From the NCBI GenBank assembly GCA_047495785.1, contig JBLDXI010000026.1, positions 496,001 through 560,000 of the forward strand: 64,000 nt of DNA, given 5' to 3'. The translations under genes and the position numbers were made by a program. Origin of the DNA: Lepidodermella squamata (taxonomy: Eukaryota > Animalia > Gastrotricha). This document shows positions 26,285 to 48,535 of the stretch, in pieces (positions within the stretch are counted from its first letter, which is position 1; each line of letters opens with the position of its first letter). The notes under the pieces are model-generated. The model was not told where the DNA came from and did not search any database. It worked only from the letters and a program-made list of their open reading frames with translations.

Positions 26285-29200
26285 TCAAGGCGTCGACGTT
26301 TCGGACGATGACCCGCCGCCGTTTTGCTGCGCGACCATAACCAACTGGCGATACTCGGCATCTGGGTTGTAGCCGATAACTCGCCGTTGTAGTACCATCG
26401 ACACCTCAGACATAGCCGGGCGGCGCGACGGATCGGCCCGCCAGCACTCTTCCATAAGGCACGCCAACTCAGCCGGGCAGTAGGGCGACGGGATACGCGG
26501 CAAATACGTCTCATCATTCGACAGCTTACAAATGTGGGACGCTACGGCGGTTTCGTTTAGATGCGGCAGGGGTAGTAGGACCTCAGTCGGGGCGGGCGAG
26601 TAGGAAACTGTGCCCCAGGCTAGCAGCTCCCACAGGGTGACTGCAAATGACCAAACGTCGGATTTCGCCGAGTAGTCACCCGCTAGCAGGACCTCCGGCG
26701 CTGCCCACCTTACCGCGACCGGGCGATTCGCGCCTCGGCTCGATAGCGGCGTGTTCGGTTGCGAATACAGCCGCTGGTACCGTGTCCTAGCCGCGGCCGT
26801 GTCGGAGAGTTTCAGGACTAGCCCGACGCCGACGAAGCAATTCCGCGAGCCGACATCGCCGTGGCACATATGCGCGACTGAGTCCATGTACCTGAGTGCC
26901 GAACTCAACTGCGAGGCGAGATGGAGCCGGCAGGATAGCGATAGGTACGAGCTGTGATCTGCTAACAAATCAACCATATCGCCTAATTTCGGCAGTTCAT
27001 GCACTAAAATATTCGCCTGCATCGACTGGCCGACGACTAGCGATATGTTAGGGTGGTTCAAAATCGTTAGCAGCCGGCATTCCGAGGCGAATTGATCGCG
27101 AGACAGATCCGGCGCGTTCGGGAAGAGGCGTTTCACCAAAACTAGGGCAGACGATACGGACTGGTCGTTTGACCTAATTTCGCAGATGGTAATCTCGCCG
27201 AATTGCCCGCGGCCGAGCGTTTCGACGAGCAGCAACGACTCAGGGTCGATTTCGGCGACGAATCGTTCTTCAACCTCGGTCAACAACTGCTGGGCCTGTT
27301 CATCCAGATCGTTCGCCGTCGCGCTGAGATTCGCCAAAATCGGCAGGGTGTTGCCGCAGGACCCGGTCCCGCACCCTGGCCCAGCCCTAGCGCCTAGGTC
27401 GTAGGCGCTCAGGCGTGACGTGGTGTTATTGCCGGTCATTAGATGAGTCGAAGGCCGGCCGGTTGTTCGCGGCGAGGCGACCGATGTCCCAACATGCCAC
27501 CTACGACCCGCGGCCGGGGAGATCCAGCGGCCCAGGGTGCCCATAGTCGGAGCATTCCCGTTGTTGCTGTTCTGAATAAACTGGCGTTGATGGCTCGAAT
27601 TCGGGGAGATAACGTTCGGCGGCATCGGGGCGCGGATGGTGGGGAGGAACCCTGGCTGCTCATGAGGCGGGCTCACCGTCACCCCGAACGCGAGATGGCC
27701 CGAATTCGGGGGTGAGGTCAGCGCGTTAGGCATGAACCCTAGCGATGTCGCGGTTGTTGTCCAGTCAGAATTCACGCTGACCAACAACTGGCGGCTCCCG
27801 TAGGGTTTCTCAGCGGATCCATTGATATCAGGGGCGCCGGTCGAGTGGGGCGGCGAGGCGGAACCCGGCCCGGCTGAGGTGCTAGCCGCCGAGCCGCTAC
27901 TGCCGTTCGCCAGCATACACGCCTCATCGTCATGCAAAACCGACCTGAGATCTCTCAAATCACCCCTGGGGCCCAGGGCGCAAGGCCGGTAGACAAAGGC
28001 GGCACTCGGGCGCTTCAGACCCCCTGATTCAATCGAAACACCCCGCCTTCGCTTTAACCTCCGCCGCCTGATAACACAAGCGAGGACCACCACGAAAATC
28101 AACAGGGTGACTGCTAGGATCGATCCGACTACAATTGCGATGAACTCTTCGCTCAACGGCCGCAGCTCGATTATCGGTTTCGTAATCAACTGCCGATCGG
28201 GCACCACCGCCGGTTCGGTGCTAGGACTGGTCGAGGCCGTGCTATCCGCCTCGCTATTCACGTCAACATTCTCCGTCGAGTCATCGCTGGTTAAATGGCC
28301 CTCCTTAAGCCGTTTCGACAGCTCCTCATCGATGATATTCGTCATTTGCGTCGTAATTTTCCCACGCCCTGGCTTGCCCGTTTTCCACTTATTCGGGTCT
28401 TTGTTACCTGGTTTCTTCGATTTTTCCGATTTTTTCGTCGAGGTCGAAGTCAGGGTGGTTGTCGATGGCGGAATTGGTGTCGTAGTACTCGGCGTCGTCG
28501 ACGTAGTAGTCGTCACAGTCGTTTCAGCGGTTATCAGCGCTAAATCACTCGCTGGAACCGATTCGAAATGAACCTCGCTTATCGCAATCCATTGCGACGC
28601 GAAAAGCATCGTCATTTTAACGTATCGGCCGATTGTTTTCGATAGATCGATACGAATCGACTCAGGGTGGGCAGAATCCGACCGGACCGGCCTGGTTTCA
28701 ACGGCTTTTTGAAACCAAACCCCACCGATGGAGAATTCGAGTTTAACATAAGCCGGCGTTCTCACGTCTAATTTCGGGTCGTTTGACGTGTGGATGATTG
28801 CTGACGAGAAGTTGCGGACGCTGTCGAATTCGAATAGGATGCGGATGGGTTGGCCGTTGTTGCGCCATGCGACGGATCGCAGCAGGTTTCGCGAGTCGGG
28901 CTGTTGCGGGTTGGCGCCGGGTTCCAGCTGGCCGTCCATCAGGAGGCCGAGGCCTTGAACCCAACTGCCGTTTGAGAATGTACCGTCGTAGCGCGAGTCG
29001 TCTAGCAGAGCGTCGCCGAGACGGTCGCCGGGCGGGGTTGAATAGCTGACGTAGCCACCTTGGGAAAAAAATTGATAAAATATTAATAAATAGATGGACA
29101 AATTATTTTCCGAAAATTTACCAGAATTAACAAAAATTACTTCAAATTTCAAAATTTCGAAAATTCTTGGAAATACAGTATTTACAAAATTTAGAAAATT

Positions 29201-41900: not shown

Positions 41901-43844
41901 CGATAAACAAAATTTATTTCTTATAGCCTATATACTATAGGATCGTTTGTGATTTTGTTAGATCGCGTTCCTATGTCCTGGGAATTGAGATTTGTTGATT
42001 CTTTGCCTGGATTTTTATTTGATATTTAGTGTATAAGATAATAGCGTCGCGCGCGCCTTTTCTCATCCGGACGATGCGAAAAGTTTGTATTGTTTTTGTT
42101 TTTCGATTCCTTTTCTCGAGGCCGAATGAATTTTATAATAATTAAACCGGTACGCGTTCAGATCATCGCTTTGTCCTTGTTCTTGATACATTCCTCGTCC
42201 TGATCTTGGGTGAAAAGAGATTAAAAAAAATCTGAAAGCGTGATAGGAAAACAGCGCCAGACAGAACAGAAAAGATCAGGCCTGAATATTTGCGCCATTA
42301 AATTTAGGACTACAGATATGATAATTTCCGATGCTTGGCGATTGGGATGATTCATTTCCTAGATCGATAATTAATACCCGTCTGACCGCAGGATTTTTTA
42401 ATTCAGCAATCTTGAAATCTCATTTAAGTAGACAAATATTCAACACTGGTATCGGAAAAATCAGTAATTTTTGAAATCGATATCGGCTAAAGTTTAGCGT
42501 TTAACAGAATTGCGTAAAATAGTAAAATTTATCGGTTGGTTTTGATTTTTGATGAAAAAGAGATTTAAAGGAAAACGTGAAACCAGATTTCACGAAAATC
42601 TAGTGCCGGACCTTCAGATTTAATACTGGAACCTTACATTTGGGATTTGCACCTGAAACTTCAAAAATGCGGGTGAAATTTGAAAAATCAACAAAAATAC
42701 CTTTAACACGGAAAATTCTTCTATTTTGTTGCGCTTCAATGCTATTTAATTGGGAAATATTGAAATGTGATGGGACAGCAAGGCAAAAAAGCATAGAACA
42801 AAGTGTTTATTGCCCGAAAACTCATCTGCAAGGCGATTATACCGGAAGTGGCGATTTTTTGAACAATTTTAATAAAATATGGGCAGCGGAGAGTTCTGAG
42901 CTTTTATTAGCTTGAATTTTAGCGCAGTTCTCGCCCGATTATTTCCGCCTATTCTCGGTTCACTGAACATACTCATAAGAGCTAATGGCGAGAAAAAGGT
43001 GATTGTAAGCTGAAGTACTAAAGATTGACGAAAGATATATGAAACAAAATGCAGCTCCGAACTTCATGCCAGTGTTTGAAACAGGTAAGGTTTTGCAGAC
43101 CGATACCAGACCTGTGAACAGTGGAAGTCAAACTGGACCGGACCTGGAACGGCCCGTTTTAGAACAGAATTTTTTTAATCGCATGAAAATAGCGAAAGCG
43201 TGATATCAAACGCATAAAACTTCCTAACTCATCTAAAAAGTAAGATCAACCAATGTTGGGAGCCTTCTAAGCCTCAGTAAAAAAATTCGGAAGCCGTGAA
43301 CTAGCCCAACCATATCCGATAAGTTTGACCAACGCACAAATGCTCCAAGTCAAGAAAATGAGGAAAACAGCAAACTCTAATTTTTCTATAGAATTTTTTT
43401 CCATTATTCCCACGCCAAGCCTAAGTAAAAATTAAGTTTTCCCGGTCTACCGATGGCGTTTTTTGAGACCGATACCGGACCTGGAACGGCAACGGCGTCG
43501 GTCGAGTGGACCTGTTTCCAAAGCTTAACGATAGTGAAATTTTGCTAGACTCGCTCAGGTTTCTTTCAAATTCAATATTGCACGAATGTTAGTTTGGATT
43601 AGGATGAGAGCTTTTGTGCCCGTGATTCTGGACTTTCGTTAGCTGATCATCGATAAGATCGTGAACATTCTTCAATAATAATGCTCTGAGTGCCATGGAT
43701 TGTGAAAGGGTAAAGTGCTAGGTGTGGTTCATGTGTGGTTCCGTTACTCAATGCCCATTTTATTCAAATTCTAAGATAACGTGGTGCAAGCTCAGGAGTA
43801 AGGCAGCAGTCTAACAGTATTTCATTCATTTTCCATTTTTTTCT

Positions 43845-45266
43845 TTACAAAATGTGGCATATGCCACTGTTGAGGGATGGCACTCTAATTTGATTCGACG
43901 GCTGGGCAGCATCGAGAAACTGCTTAACCAGCCGCCAATCTCGCTGCACTTTCAACTTGGTCGTCTCGTTGCCAGCGAAAACAGCCTCATCTGGGAACCC
44001 AGCAAATTGCAACGTATTAGGGCCATCCACCTTTTTCAACGCAGCTTGACTTGGCTTCTTCGGATCTGCAGCATTCCGCTCGGCTTGGTAAACCCTAGGA
44101 AATTGATCCCGCAACTGCTCCATCCGAGATTCATTCACAGAATCTGCTTTAGTCGCCAGAAACATGAATCTCGTCTTGGAGCTGTTGTAACTCAACCACT
44201 GAAGAATGTTAGCAACAGTTTCGAAATAACCTGGCGGGAGACGGTCGGTTGCTGAGCATAGAATGAAAACAGCGTCGAGGTGGCGAACATTTGCTCCAAT
44301 CCGTCCGCGGAGCATTTTCACGATTTCATCATTATCCCAATGTCTGTCGTAAAATCCTACTGTGTCCGTCACGAGGATGTTACGTTGCCGTCCTCCGATC
44401 GTCCCTGTTCCACGGATAAAGTAAATCTCTCGAGTGACGTTTTCGAAACTGATCTCAGACTCGCAAATCTCTTCGTTGAAGATCACGTTGATCAGACGAG
44501 ATTTTCCTGAGCCGGTTGGGCCAATTAACAGGATGTTGTAGTCCTCATCTTTCGCCGAGTCGAGGTAATACTCAAACCGGCTCGCTCGAAAGTTTGTTTC
44601 AATGAAACTGTAAACCCGTTGCGGGACGTGATTTGGATCAAAAAAATGTGGCCTGATCGCGGCTGGGAAGGCATTAACCTTCGTCAAAACGTCGCCAATT
44701 ATGTTCGACCTAAAGTAGGACATCAAAACATTTTCACCATCCATCTGCGAACTTATCCAGCGGCCGCGGTAGATGTAATTGGCAACATGTTCGCAGTTTC
44801 GCAGGCAAAGGGAGTAGTTACACATGCCTAAGATGCTTTCCATGCGTTGTCGCATTGGTTCGTCGATTTCCTTAGCGTAAACGACTTGGTACTGATTTTC
44901 GGCGTATTGATTGCCAACAATTTGAACTCGAGCTTCGTCTAGGTCAATACGATCTGACCCGAATTCCAGGCAGTAAGGGCCGCAGAGTAGGAACCAATGG
45001 GAGTAAGCTAGGCTCATGTAGGATCTGTCGATTTTGCAAAGGCACACGTCGTGGCCAATGGAGAAGGCTCCGTCGACAAGGATATCCAATCCGCGCTCTC
45101 TTATTGCGCGATCGAAAATGATGGTGTGATCCTGCTGCCACTTCAACTTCTCAGCCTTCACGATATCGTTGTTTTGAATAGCTTTTGTAACGGCTATTGG
45201 CACCCCAATGGCAGCAGCCACAGCGGCACCAGCTGCGAACATTGCTCCAACTACTTTTGAATCCAT
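43845..45266 (-). CDS. LRAT/PLAAT-like (NlpC/P60, H-box/NC) domain fused to an AIG1/GIMAP-like P-loop GTPase; intronless
   Basis: Hydrophobic N-terminus, YSHW, YSLCLRNCEHVANYIYRGRWISSQ. Then G1 GPTGSGKS, G2 VT, G3 DTVG, G4 TKAD. Confidence 0.85.
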   Translation of the reverse strand: MDSKVVGAMFAAGAAVAAAIGVPIAVTKAIQNNDIVKAEKLKWQQDHTIIFDRAIRERGLDILVDGAFSIGHDVCLCKIDRSYMSLAYSHWFLLCGPYCLEFGSDRIDLDEARVQIVGNQYAENQYQVVYAKEIDEPMRQRMESILGMCNYSLCLRNCEHVANYIYRGRWISSQMDGENVLMSYFRSNIIGDVLTKVNAFPAAIRPHFFDPNHVPQRVYSFIETNFRASRFEYYLDSAKDEDYNILLIGPTGSGKSRLINVIFNEEICESEISFENVTREIYFIRGTGTIGGRQRNILVTDTVGFYDRHWDNDEIVKMLRGRIGANVRHLDAVFILCSATDRLPPGYFETVANILQWLSYNSSKTRFMFLATKADSVNESRMEQLRDQFPRVYQAERNAADPKKPSQAALKKVDGPNTLQFAGFPDEAVFAGNETTKLKVQRDWRLVKQFLDAAQPSNQIRVPSLNSGICHIL

Positions 45267-45689: not shown

Positions 45690-47061
45690 TTACAATTCTG
45701 AGTAGCCTTTCCGCCTTAACATACAAAATGATAAGTGTCCATCTCTGAAAATTAGAAAAATTTGCATCATGAGACTGACCGCCAGCACCAAAGCTTGAAT
45801 AGACGTAGCGGCGGCGAATCCGAGATTTTCCATCATTGTCCCGGCTAGGAAAGCGCCCAAAAAGCCTCCGACTCCAAAACAGCAGTCGTAAAACGTCGAA
45901 ATGAACGCAGGTATCGAAGGGTCGTCTTTTGCCAGACCATTCAACTCACCTAGTCGTTGAACTTCTTTCGACAGCGGGACCATAACAGAAGCTAGGCCGC
46001 AATGAGCGACAATAGCTCCAACTACGAGCTGGATAAGCCCAGGCTCGAGTCCAGGGAAAATAGGACTCGGCCCAATGATCAAATAACCGAAGATTGCAAG
46101 AATCGTCCCAACAAGGATAACAACCCAACCAGCGTTGAACTTATCAGATAATCTACCCGCTATAGGAGCTGCGATGCCATAAGCTCCGGACGATGACAGG
46201 TATATTGCCCCGACTATTAACGGATCAGTTATTTCAAACTCAGCCAATCGAACACCTAATGTCGTCTCAGTGAAGACCATCGTCATTGTACCAGTTAGGC
46301 CGGTGTAAAACAGGAAGATCATGCTTAATCCAGATAGCTTTCTTAGTGCTACAAACATGTTCCCCTCACTATTTTCGTCTCCTTTTGAGTCACTAGGCAC
46401 CGCAATGAGGATAACTGGGACGAATACTATGAGAACTACGCCCATGAATAAGTAGGGCATCATGTAACCACCAGCAGCATACAAAGCACCGCCTAAACTT
46501 GGTCCGATGAGAGTCCCGAGAGAATAACTGGTCGACATGAGTCCGATGGTGAAAGTAAAATTGTCGCGGAACAGCAATCCAAGCATTGTGAAGGTTGTGA
46601 CGTAATACGCTGATACGCCAATGCCTTGGAAAATCCTGACGAGGAAGCTGAACGCTATGTAAATCGTTCCGTTTGGGCCCAGGTCGAGTAGGCCAAACAG
46701 GATTGAACATGTCGAGGCCCAGACGATGCCGGAGCATAGAAGAAATTTTAGCCCAATTTTTAACATGGTAAACGCTTTGATAATAAAACTTTATCGACAT
46801 ATTTATAAATAATCCAAGGGACTTACCAAGTATAATAGCTGCAAAGCATTGAATGAGTTGCATTGAGCCGAGAACAGCTCCTGCAATCGACTGACTCATT
46901 CCTTTCTCGATTGCTCGATTCGGAAAAAATGGGGCTGGAACTGAGAACAAAGCAGCTCCGATGAACTGAAGAGCCAAGAAGATGGCAAGTAAAAACTTTT
47001 TCTTTGCAGGCGACACTGCGGTTTTCACCGCATCTTTTCGTTCTAAAGGAGTTACTGCCAT
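45690..47061 (-). CDS. MFS transporter, SLC18B1-like; 2 exons (intron 46826-46774)
   Basis: APFFP, RIFQGIG, GPSLGGALYAAGGY..P, GRLSDK, GPSP, about 12 hydrophobic segments. A 53-bp gtaagt...aag intron joins the two ORFs. Confidence 0.9.
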
Positions 47062-48535
47062 CGAATGATAGCTTTGGGAATGCAAATAAGTGCTGCCCGA
47101 TGCCCAGACCGAGCTGAACAAATGGCTTCGATCTACACTCATTTTTGTGGTTGAGAATGAAATTCCTGGAGCAAGAGCAGAAAGTTGTAATTATATAAGT
47201 GATAAGATATTATCTTATCTTTGGCAATTCAAAGCCGATGTGTCCGGCGTGCGATCCGAGTTACAGATAACAATAAGCTGTTATCTGTCCGCTGACCAAA
47301 TATTCATCTTTCGTGTGTCCAGTCATATCGTGAACTTTATTTAGGGCCAGGTGTGAGAAGAGACTTGCTTGCTAGCAGAAATCGTGTTTAATCGAAGACG
47401 TAAGCAATAGCAATTTCCCGTTCTAACGGACAATTATTAACTTCGATCCTGAGTATCGTGTTCATTAGAGATGTAGAGCCTTAATAGTAATCATTATTAC
47501 GTAGGAATAATCGGTTTAAGATGAAACAAGCGAAATTCTCTCAATAACACGCTGGTCATGGTACTTCGAGCTGTTGTTGGTGACCTGATTTGCGGAAGTT
47601 GTGATGTGATATAAACAGACTTGGGGAAATTCCTAATGCTCGCGATTTTTGATTCTTCGATTCTGATTCTCAAATTTGGGCTTAGACTCTTGATTCCGGA
47701 GCCGAAATGTTGATACCAATTCTCACCCATGCGATTCTGATTCCCGATTCTCAAAAAATTCACAAATAAATTGTGTTGAAATTGTGTTGTAATACAAAAC
47801 AGCAAGCGCATCATTCTTTTATTGAGCCTTGTCGGCCATTTCAAAAATCAAAACAAAAATCGAAAAAAATCGTAAATTAATAACTCACAACTTTGAAAAT
47901 TAATGGTTTGAATACGCTCCATTGCAAAAGGGATATTGATTAAGATTCTAAAGCTATCAATGACTTTCTATAAAATGGCTGGCTGAAATTTGTCCCTGGG
48001 ACATAGAGATCACCGAAACTTAACCACGAGAGCTCCATTGTTTTCTAGATTCCTCAATTTTGCTTTCCAAGCTGTTTGCTACATACAGGAATACATTCTG
48101 TTTCATAGTCCTCTCTTTGAGTGCGAAACTATAAGCTACACGTGATTTTTGTCAAAAAGCTGAACGCGACGTACGCTGCTGTATTTCACAGACAGATCTT
48201 ATTACGTATGCTTTATCCCGTGCTCGCCCGATTGTCTACATTGATCGATATGTTTTTTTATGCGGACGCGTTGATCTTGTTTTTCAAGTTGACGTGGTTT
48301 TGTCAAGTAAATTCATGTGAAAGCGCATGTAATTGCCCATGATATTATGTAGCCACTCATTCAGCAAAGTGTTTAAACATACATTTTGTATTTTCAGATT
48401 TCATGTGTTTTGATTTCTTCGCTTGATAGATAATGTTCTCTATCCGTATGCGAAAGTGATGACTGTAGGAGTCAGTATATAAAATATAACGCCAGTGTAA
48501 CGAGCGAACTTTTCATCCTAGCCACTCAAGAATCA

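Follow-up and report, generated by a model that had tools for sequence, protein, structure and literature searches.

An LRAT/PLAAT-like domain joined to an AIG1/GIMAP-type GTPase in the gastrotrich Lepidodermella squamata: a conserved, undescribed eukaryotic architecture

Does a single uninterrupted reading frame of the gastrotrich Lepidodermella squamata encode a genuine fusion of an LRAT/PLAAT acyltransferase domain with an AIG1/GIMAP-type GTPase and, if so, what would such a protein do? The question was raised by an earlier note, made from the letters alone, on a 64,000-nucleotide stretch of this genome (contig JBLDXI010000026.1, positions 496,001 to 560,000; hereafter the window, to which all coordinates refer unless a contig is named). 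The open reading frame (ORF) lies at 43845..45266 on the minus strand and encodes 473 amino acids plus the stop. It was found to combine two known domains in a conserved eukaryotic architecture that is undescribed, as full-text searches of the literature returned no description of an LRAT/PLAAT-AIG1/GIMAP fusion. In two papers of the Aravind group (including PMC7159879), GIMAP-type GTPases appear as effector domains of conflict systems in bacteria, not with LRAT.

A single-exon gene and its eukaryotic relatives

The ORF runs from ATG to stop without a break and is matched at 100% in the genome with zero stops. This is in good agreement with the intronless gene of the earlier note, which had not given the strand. 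An exhaustive HMMER pass recovered 594 representatives with an E-value of at most 0.001, of which 98 fell below 1e-30; counted as clusters at 50% identity, the family comprises at least 98. The result is far from what a chance ORF would give, and such conservation indicates that the window carries a real, functional animal gene. Most representatives are 410-470 amino acids long and were aligned from about residue 35 to residue 385, so that the relatives carry both domains.

Named members come from the springtail Folsomia candida (annotated as "GTPase IMAP family member 4"), the fly Bradysia odoriphaga, the rotifer Adineta ricciae and the chytrid Cladochytrium tenue. One ESM Atlas cluster of 67 members lists Nematoda, and another cluster holds a member from a source labelled "merc", which we take to be a marine eukaryote transcript catalogue. 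The metagenomic contigs bearing family members also bear animal or other eukaryotic genes. The Cladochytrium protein (P0108, 1335 amino acids) contains a complete family module in residues 1 to about 450 (MGQSIST..., RNCEH, P-loop), after which come a Zn2Cys6-like motif and an extended low-complexity tail; it may be a merged gene model and not a larger architecture.

No relative was found when viral contigs were scanned with the N-domain motif. The search for stand-alone eukaryotic N-domain proteins gave five matches, and no free-standing form was seen, the contig of only one of the five (P0124) having been examined; it proved to carry the first exon of a split gene. As to whether the fusion is already widespread and characterised, which the earlier note had named as grounds for giving up its proposal, it is indeed widespread, but no characterisation was encountered in the literature searched.

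Matching sequence was present in two public sequencing runs (X1 and X2). In X2, every bin of a 4.6-kb stretch was covered, as DNA would give. The contigs of X1 were confined to 43839-45191, with zero differences from the window and no joints within the ORF. The depth of X1 was zero across the intergenic stretches on either side, and over an exon of the neighbouring MFS transporter gene it was low, about ten times below the depth over the fusion ORF. The loose end of one X1 contig reads CAGTGGTATCAACGCAGAGTAC, then T's, the former being presumably the SMART primer used for complementary DNA (cDNA). Since the contigs lie only over the ORF and one ends in such a primer, X1 was read as cDNA-like, and the gene is probably transcribed. 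The classification of the run as RNA is itself marked as a guess. Other X1 contigs, which differ at 7 positions in about every 115 bases, form a second group that is consistent with the closely related copy on contig C25 described below. A candidate AATAAA polyadenylation signal is located 81 nt beyond the stop (43759..43764, minus strand), and the cDNA-like contigs stop at 43839, before it.

Domains and predicted membrane anchors

The LRAT/PLAAT-like domain, a circularly permuted NlpC/P60 fold, comprises residues 70-176 (44739..45059, minus strand, as for all features of the protein). The window copy scored 21.6 bits against Pfam LRAT (PF04970) as a whole protein and 23.5 bits as the domain alone, and the gathering cut-off of 24.3 bits was not reached. 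When the N-domains of 59 relatives were scanned singly, 39 of them matched LRAT at E ≤ 0.01 (best 5.4e-7) and no other Pfam family recurred, a single relative matching PPPDE (PF05903). On this ground, the assignment is taken to stand despite the sub-threshold score.

An AlphaFold model of the N-domain alone had a mean predicted local distance difference test (pLDDT) value of 91. It was compared by VIA-align with 48,161 PDB representatives. A subunit of the Euglena respiratory supercomplex ranked first (Z 8.3), followed by Aichivirus 2A (Z 7.2), PLAAT4 (Z 7.0, 25% identity over 91 residues) and a DUF862 deSUMOylase (Z 6.2). TseH (Z 5.5), CLN5 (Z 5.4), YiiX (Z 5.2) and a Bacillus cysteine peptidase were also matched, and Z dropped to 3.7 after rank 8. 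Leaving out the Euglena chain, the named matches are NlpC/P60-type or permuted papain-like folds. Foldseek gave no match of the N-domain in the PDB at E ≤ 0.001; its weak ranking, headed by 2A H-box/NC proteins and PLAAT4, is only suggestive, so weight was placed on VIA-align and on the ESM Atlas, where PF04970 makes up 100% of every one of the nearest non-self structure clusters.

The putative catalytic triad consists of His90 (44997-44999) in the motif YSHW, Glu101 (44964-44966) and Cys158 (44793-44795) within R-N-C-E-H, whose Asn-Cys-Glu-His occupies residues 157-160. The intact His...NCEH motif read in the earlier note could thus be confirmed. In the model, H90 is placed on strand 86-95, E101 on strand 98-102 and C158 at the head of helix 158-167. 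Among the 59 relatives R156, N157 and E159 are invariant, H90 and H160 are each conserved in 57, and E101 in 56, with Gln in the other 3. In the profile alignment H90 pairs with the "YAHW"/"YEHW" of PLAAT2/4. The PLAATs have one His on β2, another on β3, and the Cys of "NCEHFV" at the N-terminus of α3 (PMC10102619); the same review allows any polar residue as the third member of the triad, PLAAT1 having Asn (PMC10102619). E101, 11 residues past H90, is polar, being Glu instead of His. The agreement of the conserved H90, E101 and C158 with the PLAAT triad sites supports an LRAT-like assignment. The nucleophile position itself varies: it is Cys in 73, Ser in 30 and Gly in one of 104 relatives (C 40 and S 17 among the 59 aligned), with at least 15 Cys/Ser switches on the tree, and the adjacent R, N, E and H stay fixed. 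The window copy retains Cys.

A bridge to Pfam LRAT, supporting the same assignment, is provided by a bacterium. A genome-collection scan revealed a stand-alone ORF of 166 amino acids in a metagenome-assembled genome (MAG) of Archangium (L013:2863-3360, plus strand). This ORF matches Pfam LRAT clearly, at 48.8 bits over profile positions 5-118 of 120, and the family profile as well (hhalign 98.2%, E 5e-14). It shares with the family the motifs YSHY...LELSG, with the His and the Glu, and RNCEHVARYV..G.W.S.Q; unlike the family, it has no GTPase and no eukaryotic lipidation signals, and it carries a hydrophobic C-terminal stretch as in PLAATs. Altogether, five independent lines from sequence and models support the LRAT-like nature of the N-domain. 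The LRAT/PLAAT domain of the earlier note therefore survives through the family profile, the fold, the bacterial bridge and the active-site residues, but not through the score of the window copy. In front of the domain stands a family-specific helix (45117..45170) with the motif E39-x3-W43-x3-H47, in which W43 is invariant and E39 and H47 are each found in 57 of the 59 relatives.

A linker (residues 177-240, 44547..44738) with the motif N198-x-F-P201, of which P201 is invariant and N198 conserved in at least 90%, leads to the AIG1/GIMAP/Toc34-type G domain (residues 241-400, 44067..44546). Pfam AIG1 (PF04548) scored 30.0 bits (cut-off 27) and MMR_HSR1 30.7 bits (cut-off 21.9). The AIG1 match extends over residues 244-358 and stops about halfway along the profile (positions 2-111 of 212). 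Among proteins of solved structure, GIMAP7 (E 4e-6) and GIMAP5 were closest in sequence, then septins. The AlphaFold model of the whole protein, built on the 59 relatives, reached a pLDDT of 87 and a predicted template-modelling score of 0.80; its Foldseek matches were GIMAP7 (3zjc, E 2.3e-9) and Toc34 (1h65, E 1.1e-8), and also Toc33, GIMAP2 and GIMAP5. NCBIfam and PADLOC scans yielded generic GTPase similarity alone, far under their cut-offs. The earlier note had listed complete G1-G4 motifs in an AIG1/GIMAP-like GTPase. Both statements hold, the family through Pfam above cut-off and the fold, and the motifs through columns conserved among the 59 relatives: G1 GPTGSGKS (residues 249-256, 44499-44522), the switch-I Thr278, G3 DTVG (301-304, 44355-44366) and G4 TKAD (372-375, 44142-44153). 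The two-domain architecture is likewise supported by the Pfam AIG1 match, the LRAT matches of the family and the fold.

Between G3 and G4, a conserved hydrophobic strand is followed by a near-invariant R342, and the Pfam and PDB alignments stop before or around this point. Just after G3, residue 306 (44347-44349) is Cys in 51 of the 59 relatives (DT[IV]G[FL]CD) and Tyr in the window copy. The G domain is followed by a C-terminal helical extension (residues 401-469, 43860..44066; pLDDT about 90), with helices at 405-412, 427-430 and 434-452.

Both ends of the protein carry predicted membrane anchors. Residues 5-26 (45189..45254), within the hydrophobic N-terminus MDSKVVGAMFAAGAAVAAAIGVPIAV, form a predicted signal-anchor or transmembrane helix and are the sole strongly hydrophobic stretch of the protein. 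The Kyte-Doolittle 19-residue mean peaks at 2.11 over residues 8-26 and the AlphaFold model has a helix at residues 4-20, as it is expected from the hydrophobic anchor proposed earlier. At the other end a CaaX box, CHIL (residues 470-473, 43848..43859), which had been overlooked, is a predicted geranylgeranylation site, its Cys470 being present in 52 of the 59 aligned relatives. Among 104 full-length relatives, 57 start with MG, 43 with MGxxx[ST], 87 end with Cxxx (the final residue being Leu in 78) and 51 bear both signals. With an MGxxx[ST] start and a CxxL end, the typical family member is predicted to be N-myristoylated and geranylgeranylated.

The MG start is lost in all members of the clade of the window copy, and in the window copy the hydrophobic helix is found in its place. 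Within this clade, Ala/Gly-rich hydrophobic N-termini occur in the window copy and its C25 partner, in L003/L004 and in L005. On a maximum-likelihood tree (85 rows, quick search), hydrophobic N-termini arose independently in P0075, P0095 and P0148, each nested in MG clades. This convergent replacement of a myristoyl signal by a helix suggests a membrane-tethering role for the N-terminus and a cytosolic position of the catalytic bulk. The helix would have taken over the role of the myristoyl anchor in the clade of this genome, and the protein would be tethered at both ends. A cleaved signal peptide was rejected on indirect grounds, since the hydrophobic core runs to about 22 residues, the relatives predicted to be myristoylated would be cytosolic, and both the CaaX box and the GTPase need the cytosol.

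In comparison with PLAAT1-5 and LRAT (H-REV107/HRASLS, PF04970), including the picornavirus 2A H-box/NC proteins, the window protein has in common the permuted NlpC/P60 fold, the β2 His, the nucleophile in N-C-E-H at a helix start and a predicted membrane tethering. It differs in its third triad residue, a conserved Glu where PLAATs have His or Asn, in a nucleophile that alternates between Cys and Ser, and in the added ExxxWxxxH helix and W170-x-S-x-Q motif. The transmembrane helix that follows the catalytic domain of PLAAT1-4 and LRAT is absent; a linker and a GTPase stand there instead, fused to an LRAT-like domain that in the window copy is under the Pfam cut-off, and the predicted anchors are N-terminal (helix or myristoyl) and C-terminal (prenyl). 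With the GIMAP/AIG1 (IAN) and Toc33/34/159 GTPases of the septin-related TRAFAC branch it shares the AIG1 score, the fold, intact G1-G4, a helical C-terminal extension and a predicted membrane anchoring. Unlike in GIMAP/AIG1 proteins, the sequence match is confined to the first half of the AIG1 profile, CaaX prenylation is predicted where those proteins have C-terminal hydrophobic helices, and an enzyme domain is attached in cis.

Proposed mechanism and competing readings

In the reading that we prefer, and whose chances we consider evenly balanced, the protein is a doubly membrane-tethered two-domain enzyme in which PLAAT-type lipid acyl chemistry is GTP-gated in cis. The order of its parts would be hydrophobic helix, ExxxWxxxH helix, LRAT/PLAAT-like domain, linker, GTPase with helical tail and CaaX box, and both ends would hold it on the cytosolic face of a membrane. 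Cys158 (Ser in some relatives), activated by His90 and Glu101, would attack the ester-linked acyl chain of a glycerophospholipid and form an acyl-enzyme. Transfer of the acyl group to water or to another lipid would give phospholipase A1/2 or acyltransferase activity, as in PLAATs. The G domain would switch or position the acyl step through GTP binding, probably by nucleotide-dependent self-association as in GIMAPs, Toc34 and septins. For Toc33/159, the title of PDB entry 2j3e states that dimerisation matters for GTPase activity. It is from these features that we infer a GTP-gated lipid acyl-hydrolase/transferase, its substrate and its control by GTP. The GTP-regulated membrane-remodelling or defence effector suggested in the earlier note is likewise a hypothesis.

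Several observations weigh against this proposal. For the whole family, the enzyme function is a prediction from sequence and models. The LRAT score of the window copy is under the gathering cut-off, and the N-domain profile reaches PLAAT2 and PLAAT4 among the PDB chains only at E 0.4-0.7 (about 0.5), below an unrelated otoferlin match, which makes this search unusable alone. The third triad residue is Glu and not His. The Ser nucleophile of about 30% of the relatives could mean lost activity or another chemistry. PPPDE/DeSI and other amidase-type permuted papain folds match the model nearly as well (Z 6.2 and 5.2-5.5). A homodimer prediction for the G domain (residues 233-462) gave no verdict, neither for nor against binding.

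The competing readings were ranked by weight as an amidase or isopeptidase, an inert module, and a recent retrocopy or transfer. According to the first of them, the N-domain would be an amidase or peptidase, either a PPPDE/DeSI-type isopeptidase or a remover of lipidated protein termini at the membrane, regulated by the GTPase. The structural matches to the DUF862 deSUMOylase, TseH, CLN5 and YiiX, all above the structural background, and the one PPPDE match among the relatives argue for it. The NlpC/P60 superfamily, which Anantharaman and Aravind reportedly treated in 2003, also consists mainly of amidases. However, LRAT is the sole recurrent Pfam match (39/59), the nearest Atlas structure clusters are all PF04970, and the nearest relative among bacteria consists of a complete Pfam LRAT domain. 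R-N-C-E-H also matches the PLAAT "NCEHFV" (PMC10102619). This reading is considered unlikely.

According to the second, the LRAT-like domain would be catalytically inert and would bind lipid or protein, as the picornavirus 2A H-box/NC domain, leaving a membrane-scaffolding GIMAP-like GTPase. The replacement of Cys by Ser or Gly, with its repeated switches on the tree, is consistent with this, and so are the top Foldseek matches to viral 2A H-box/NC proteins, described in a preprint as not being proteases (bioRxiv 10.1101/2024.04.06.588386). On the other hand, R156, N157 and E159 are invariant and H90, E101 and H160 conserved to at least 95% at only about 25% sequence identity, a pattern that would be difficult to account for in a domain without catalytic activity. 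Next to a His/acid pair, Ser can itself act as the nucleophile, and the window copy keeps its Cys. An inert domain is in our view rather improbable.

Paralogues, origin and meaning for the family

The genome (121 Mb, 151 contigs) was found to contain ten full-length, stop-free paralogues, each in a single ORF. The nearest one, on contig C25, has 96% protein identity to the window copy and is collinear with it across the 4.4 kb compared, including the MFS gene. Between the window copy (contig C26) and the C25 copy, the ratio of nonsynonymous to synonymous substitution rates (dN/dS) was 0.108 at a dS of 0.19; by region it was 0.12 in the N-domain, 0.017 in the G domain and 0 in the C-terminal tail. 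The window gene is under purifying selection.

On the tree, L001-L007 and L010 form a clade exclusive to this genome (Shimodaira-Hasegawa-like approximate likelihood ratio test 83). L008 and L009 retain MG...CaaX and group with sequences of Folsomia, Bradysia and Adineta. L006 and L007 are a tandem pair 16 kb apart (contig C28:1030729-1048631), with a dN/dS of 0.93, and the CaaX box is absent from L007 and L010. The high ratio of the pair and these losses of the CaaX box suggest that some copies are relaxed or diversifying.

Contigs C25 and C26 carry two collinear gene pairs (L001/L002 and L003/L004) about 180-200 kb apart, at a dS of 0.19-0.24 and with 7% non-coding divergence. This hints at very diverged haplotypes or homeologous chromosomes, as in a hybrid or asexual genome.

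At least one relative from another animal is split by an intron. P0124 (184 amino acids), whose contigs also carry hemocyanin and Ig-domain genes, ends in L014 at a GTAAGT donor, and about 148 nt later a ...CTACAG acceptor (GT..AG) opens a second ORF. Read separately, this second ORF is 41% identical to residues 216-460 of the query and ends in CNIL, which places the intron at the equivalent of the linker of the window protein. The third reading, a recent retrocopy or recent horizontal acquisition, starts from the absence of introns, as did the retroposition or horizontal origin raised in the earlier note; it could appeal to the single ORFs of all ten paralogues, to this linker intron and to the stand-alone N-domain homologue of the myxobacterial MAG. 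It is very improbable, since the collinearity of the gene and its MFS neighbour on C26 and C25 at a dS of about 0.19 makes the locus old, most relatives in many organisms are also single ORFs of 420-450 amino acids, the myristoylation and CaaX signals conserved family-wide are eukaryotic features, other long unbroken coding stretches in the window (955 amino acids of a DDR-like kinase and 507 of an M13 peptidase) make intron poverty ordinary here, the GC content of the gene (0.45) is no outlier, and the bacterial match covers the N-domain alone at 28% identity.

In a wider frame, an ancient bacterial origin of the N-domain is possible. The Archangium LRAT ORF and a prokaryotic viperin gene (pVip, L013:1744-2820, minus strand, 208 bits in PADLOC) are divergently oriented and 43 bp apart, and an HNH-domain ORF is found just downstream. 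Bacterial LRAT-like proteins may accordingly be placed in a defence-island context, of which this is a single instance.

Other features of the window were also recorded. The MFS transporter gene (45690-47142, minus strand) ends 424 bp upstream of the fusion ORF on the same strand; two of its ORFs overlap in different frames, which points to a short intron near 46393-46766. Just downstream of the fusion gene, at 42954-43569, the summed contig depth of run X2 was about 470-560, against about 80 over the fusion gene. Several variant contigs and a 77-nt skip were seen there, and the region looks like a multi-copy repeat. The 955-amino-acid ORF (26285-29152, minus strand) has DDR1/2 discoidin-like and tyrosine-kinase domains. 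It lies in a GC-rich stretch (0.56), the only one in the window, the rest being at about 0.42.

A bolder proposal, which we regard as a long shot, is that invertebrates and protists use the family as an executor of cell-autonomous immunity or organelle clearance. A pathogen vacuole or a damaged organelle would provide the target membrane; the GIMAP-like GTPase, having sensed it or assembled on it, would turn on the PLAAT-like phospholipase in cis, leading to membrane rupture or remodelling. The ten-copy lineage expansion, the L006/L007 ratio, the Cys/Ser switching and the viperin neighbour are suggestive in this respect. If this were true, a single polypeptide would do what vertebrates divide between immune GTPases and PLAAT enzymes.

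Membrane integrity, organelle turnover and immunity are processes to which both PLAAT enzymes and GIMAP-type GTPases have been tied. To our knowledge, it is poorly understood how either of them is switched on at a particular membrane. As members are annotated merely as "GIMAP" or "hypothetical", the enzyme half of the family has been overlooked in databases. Conservation of the family extends from animals to a chytrid and to metagenomic or metatranscriptomic eukaryotes, and the Cys/Ser exchanges and myristoyl-to-helix swaps among its members are natural experiments in how the enzyme works and is targeted. With both domains in one chain and predicted anchors at both ends, the family would offer a direct case of nucleotide-gated lipid-acyl chemistry.

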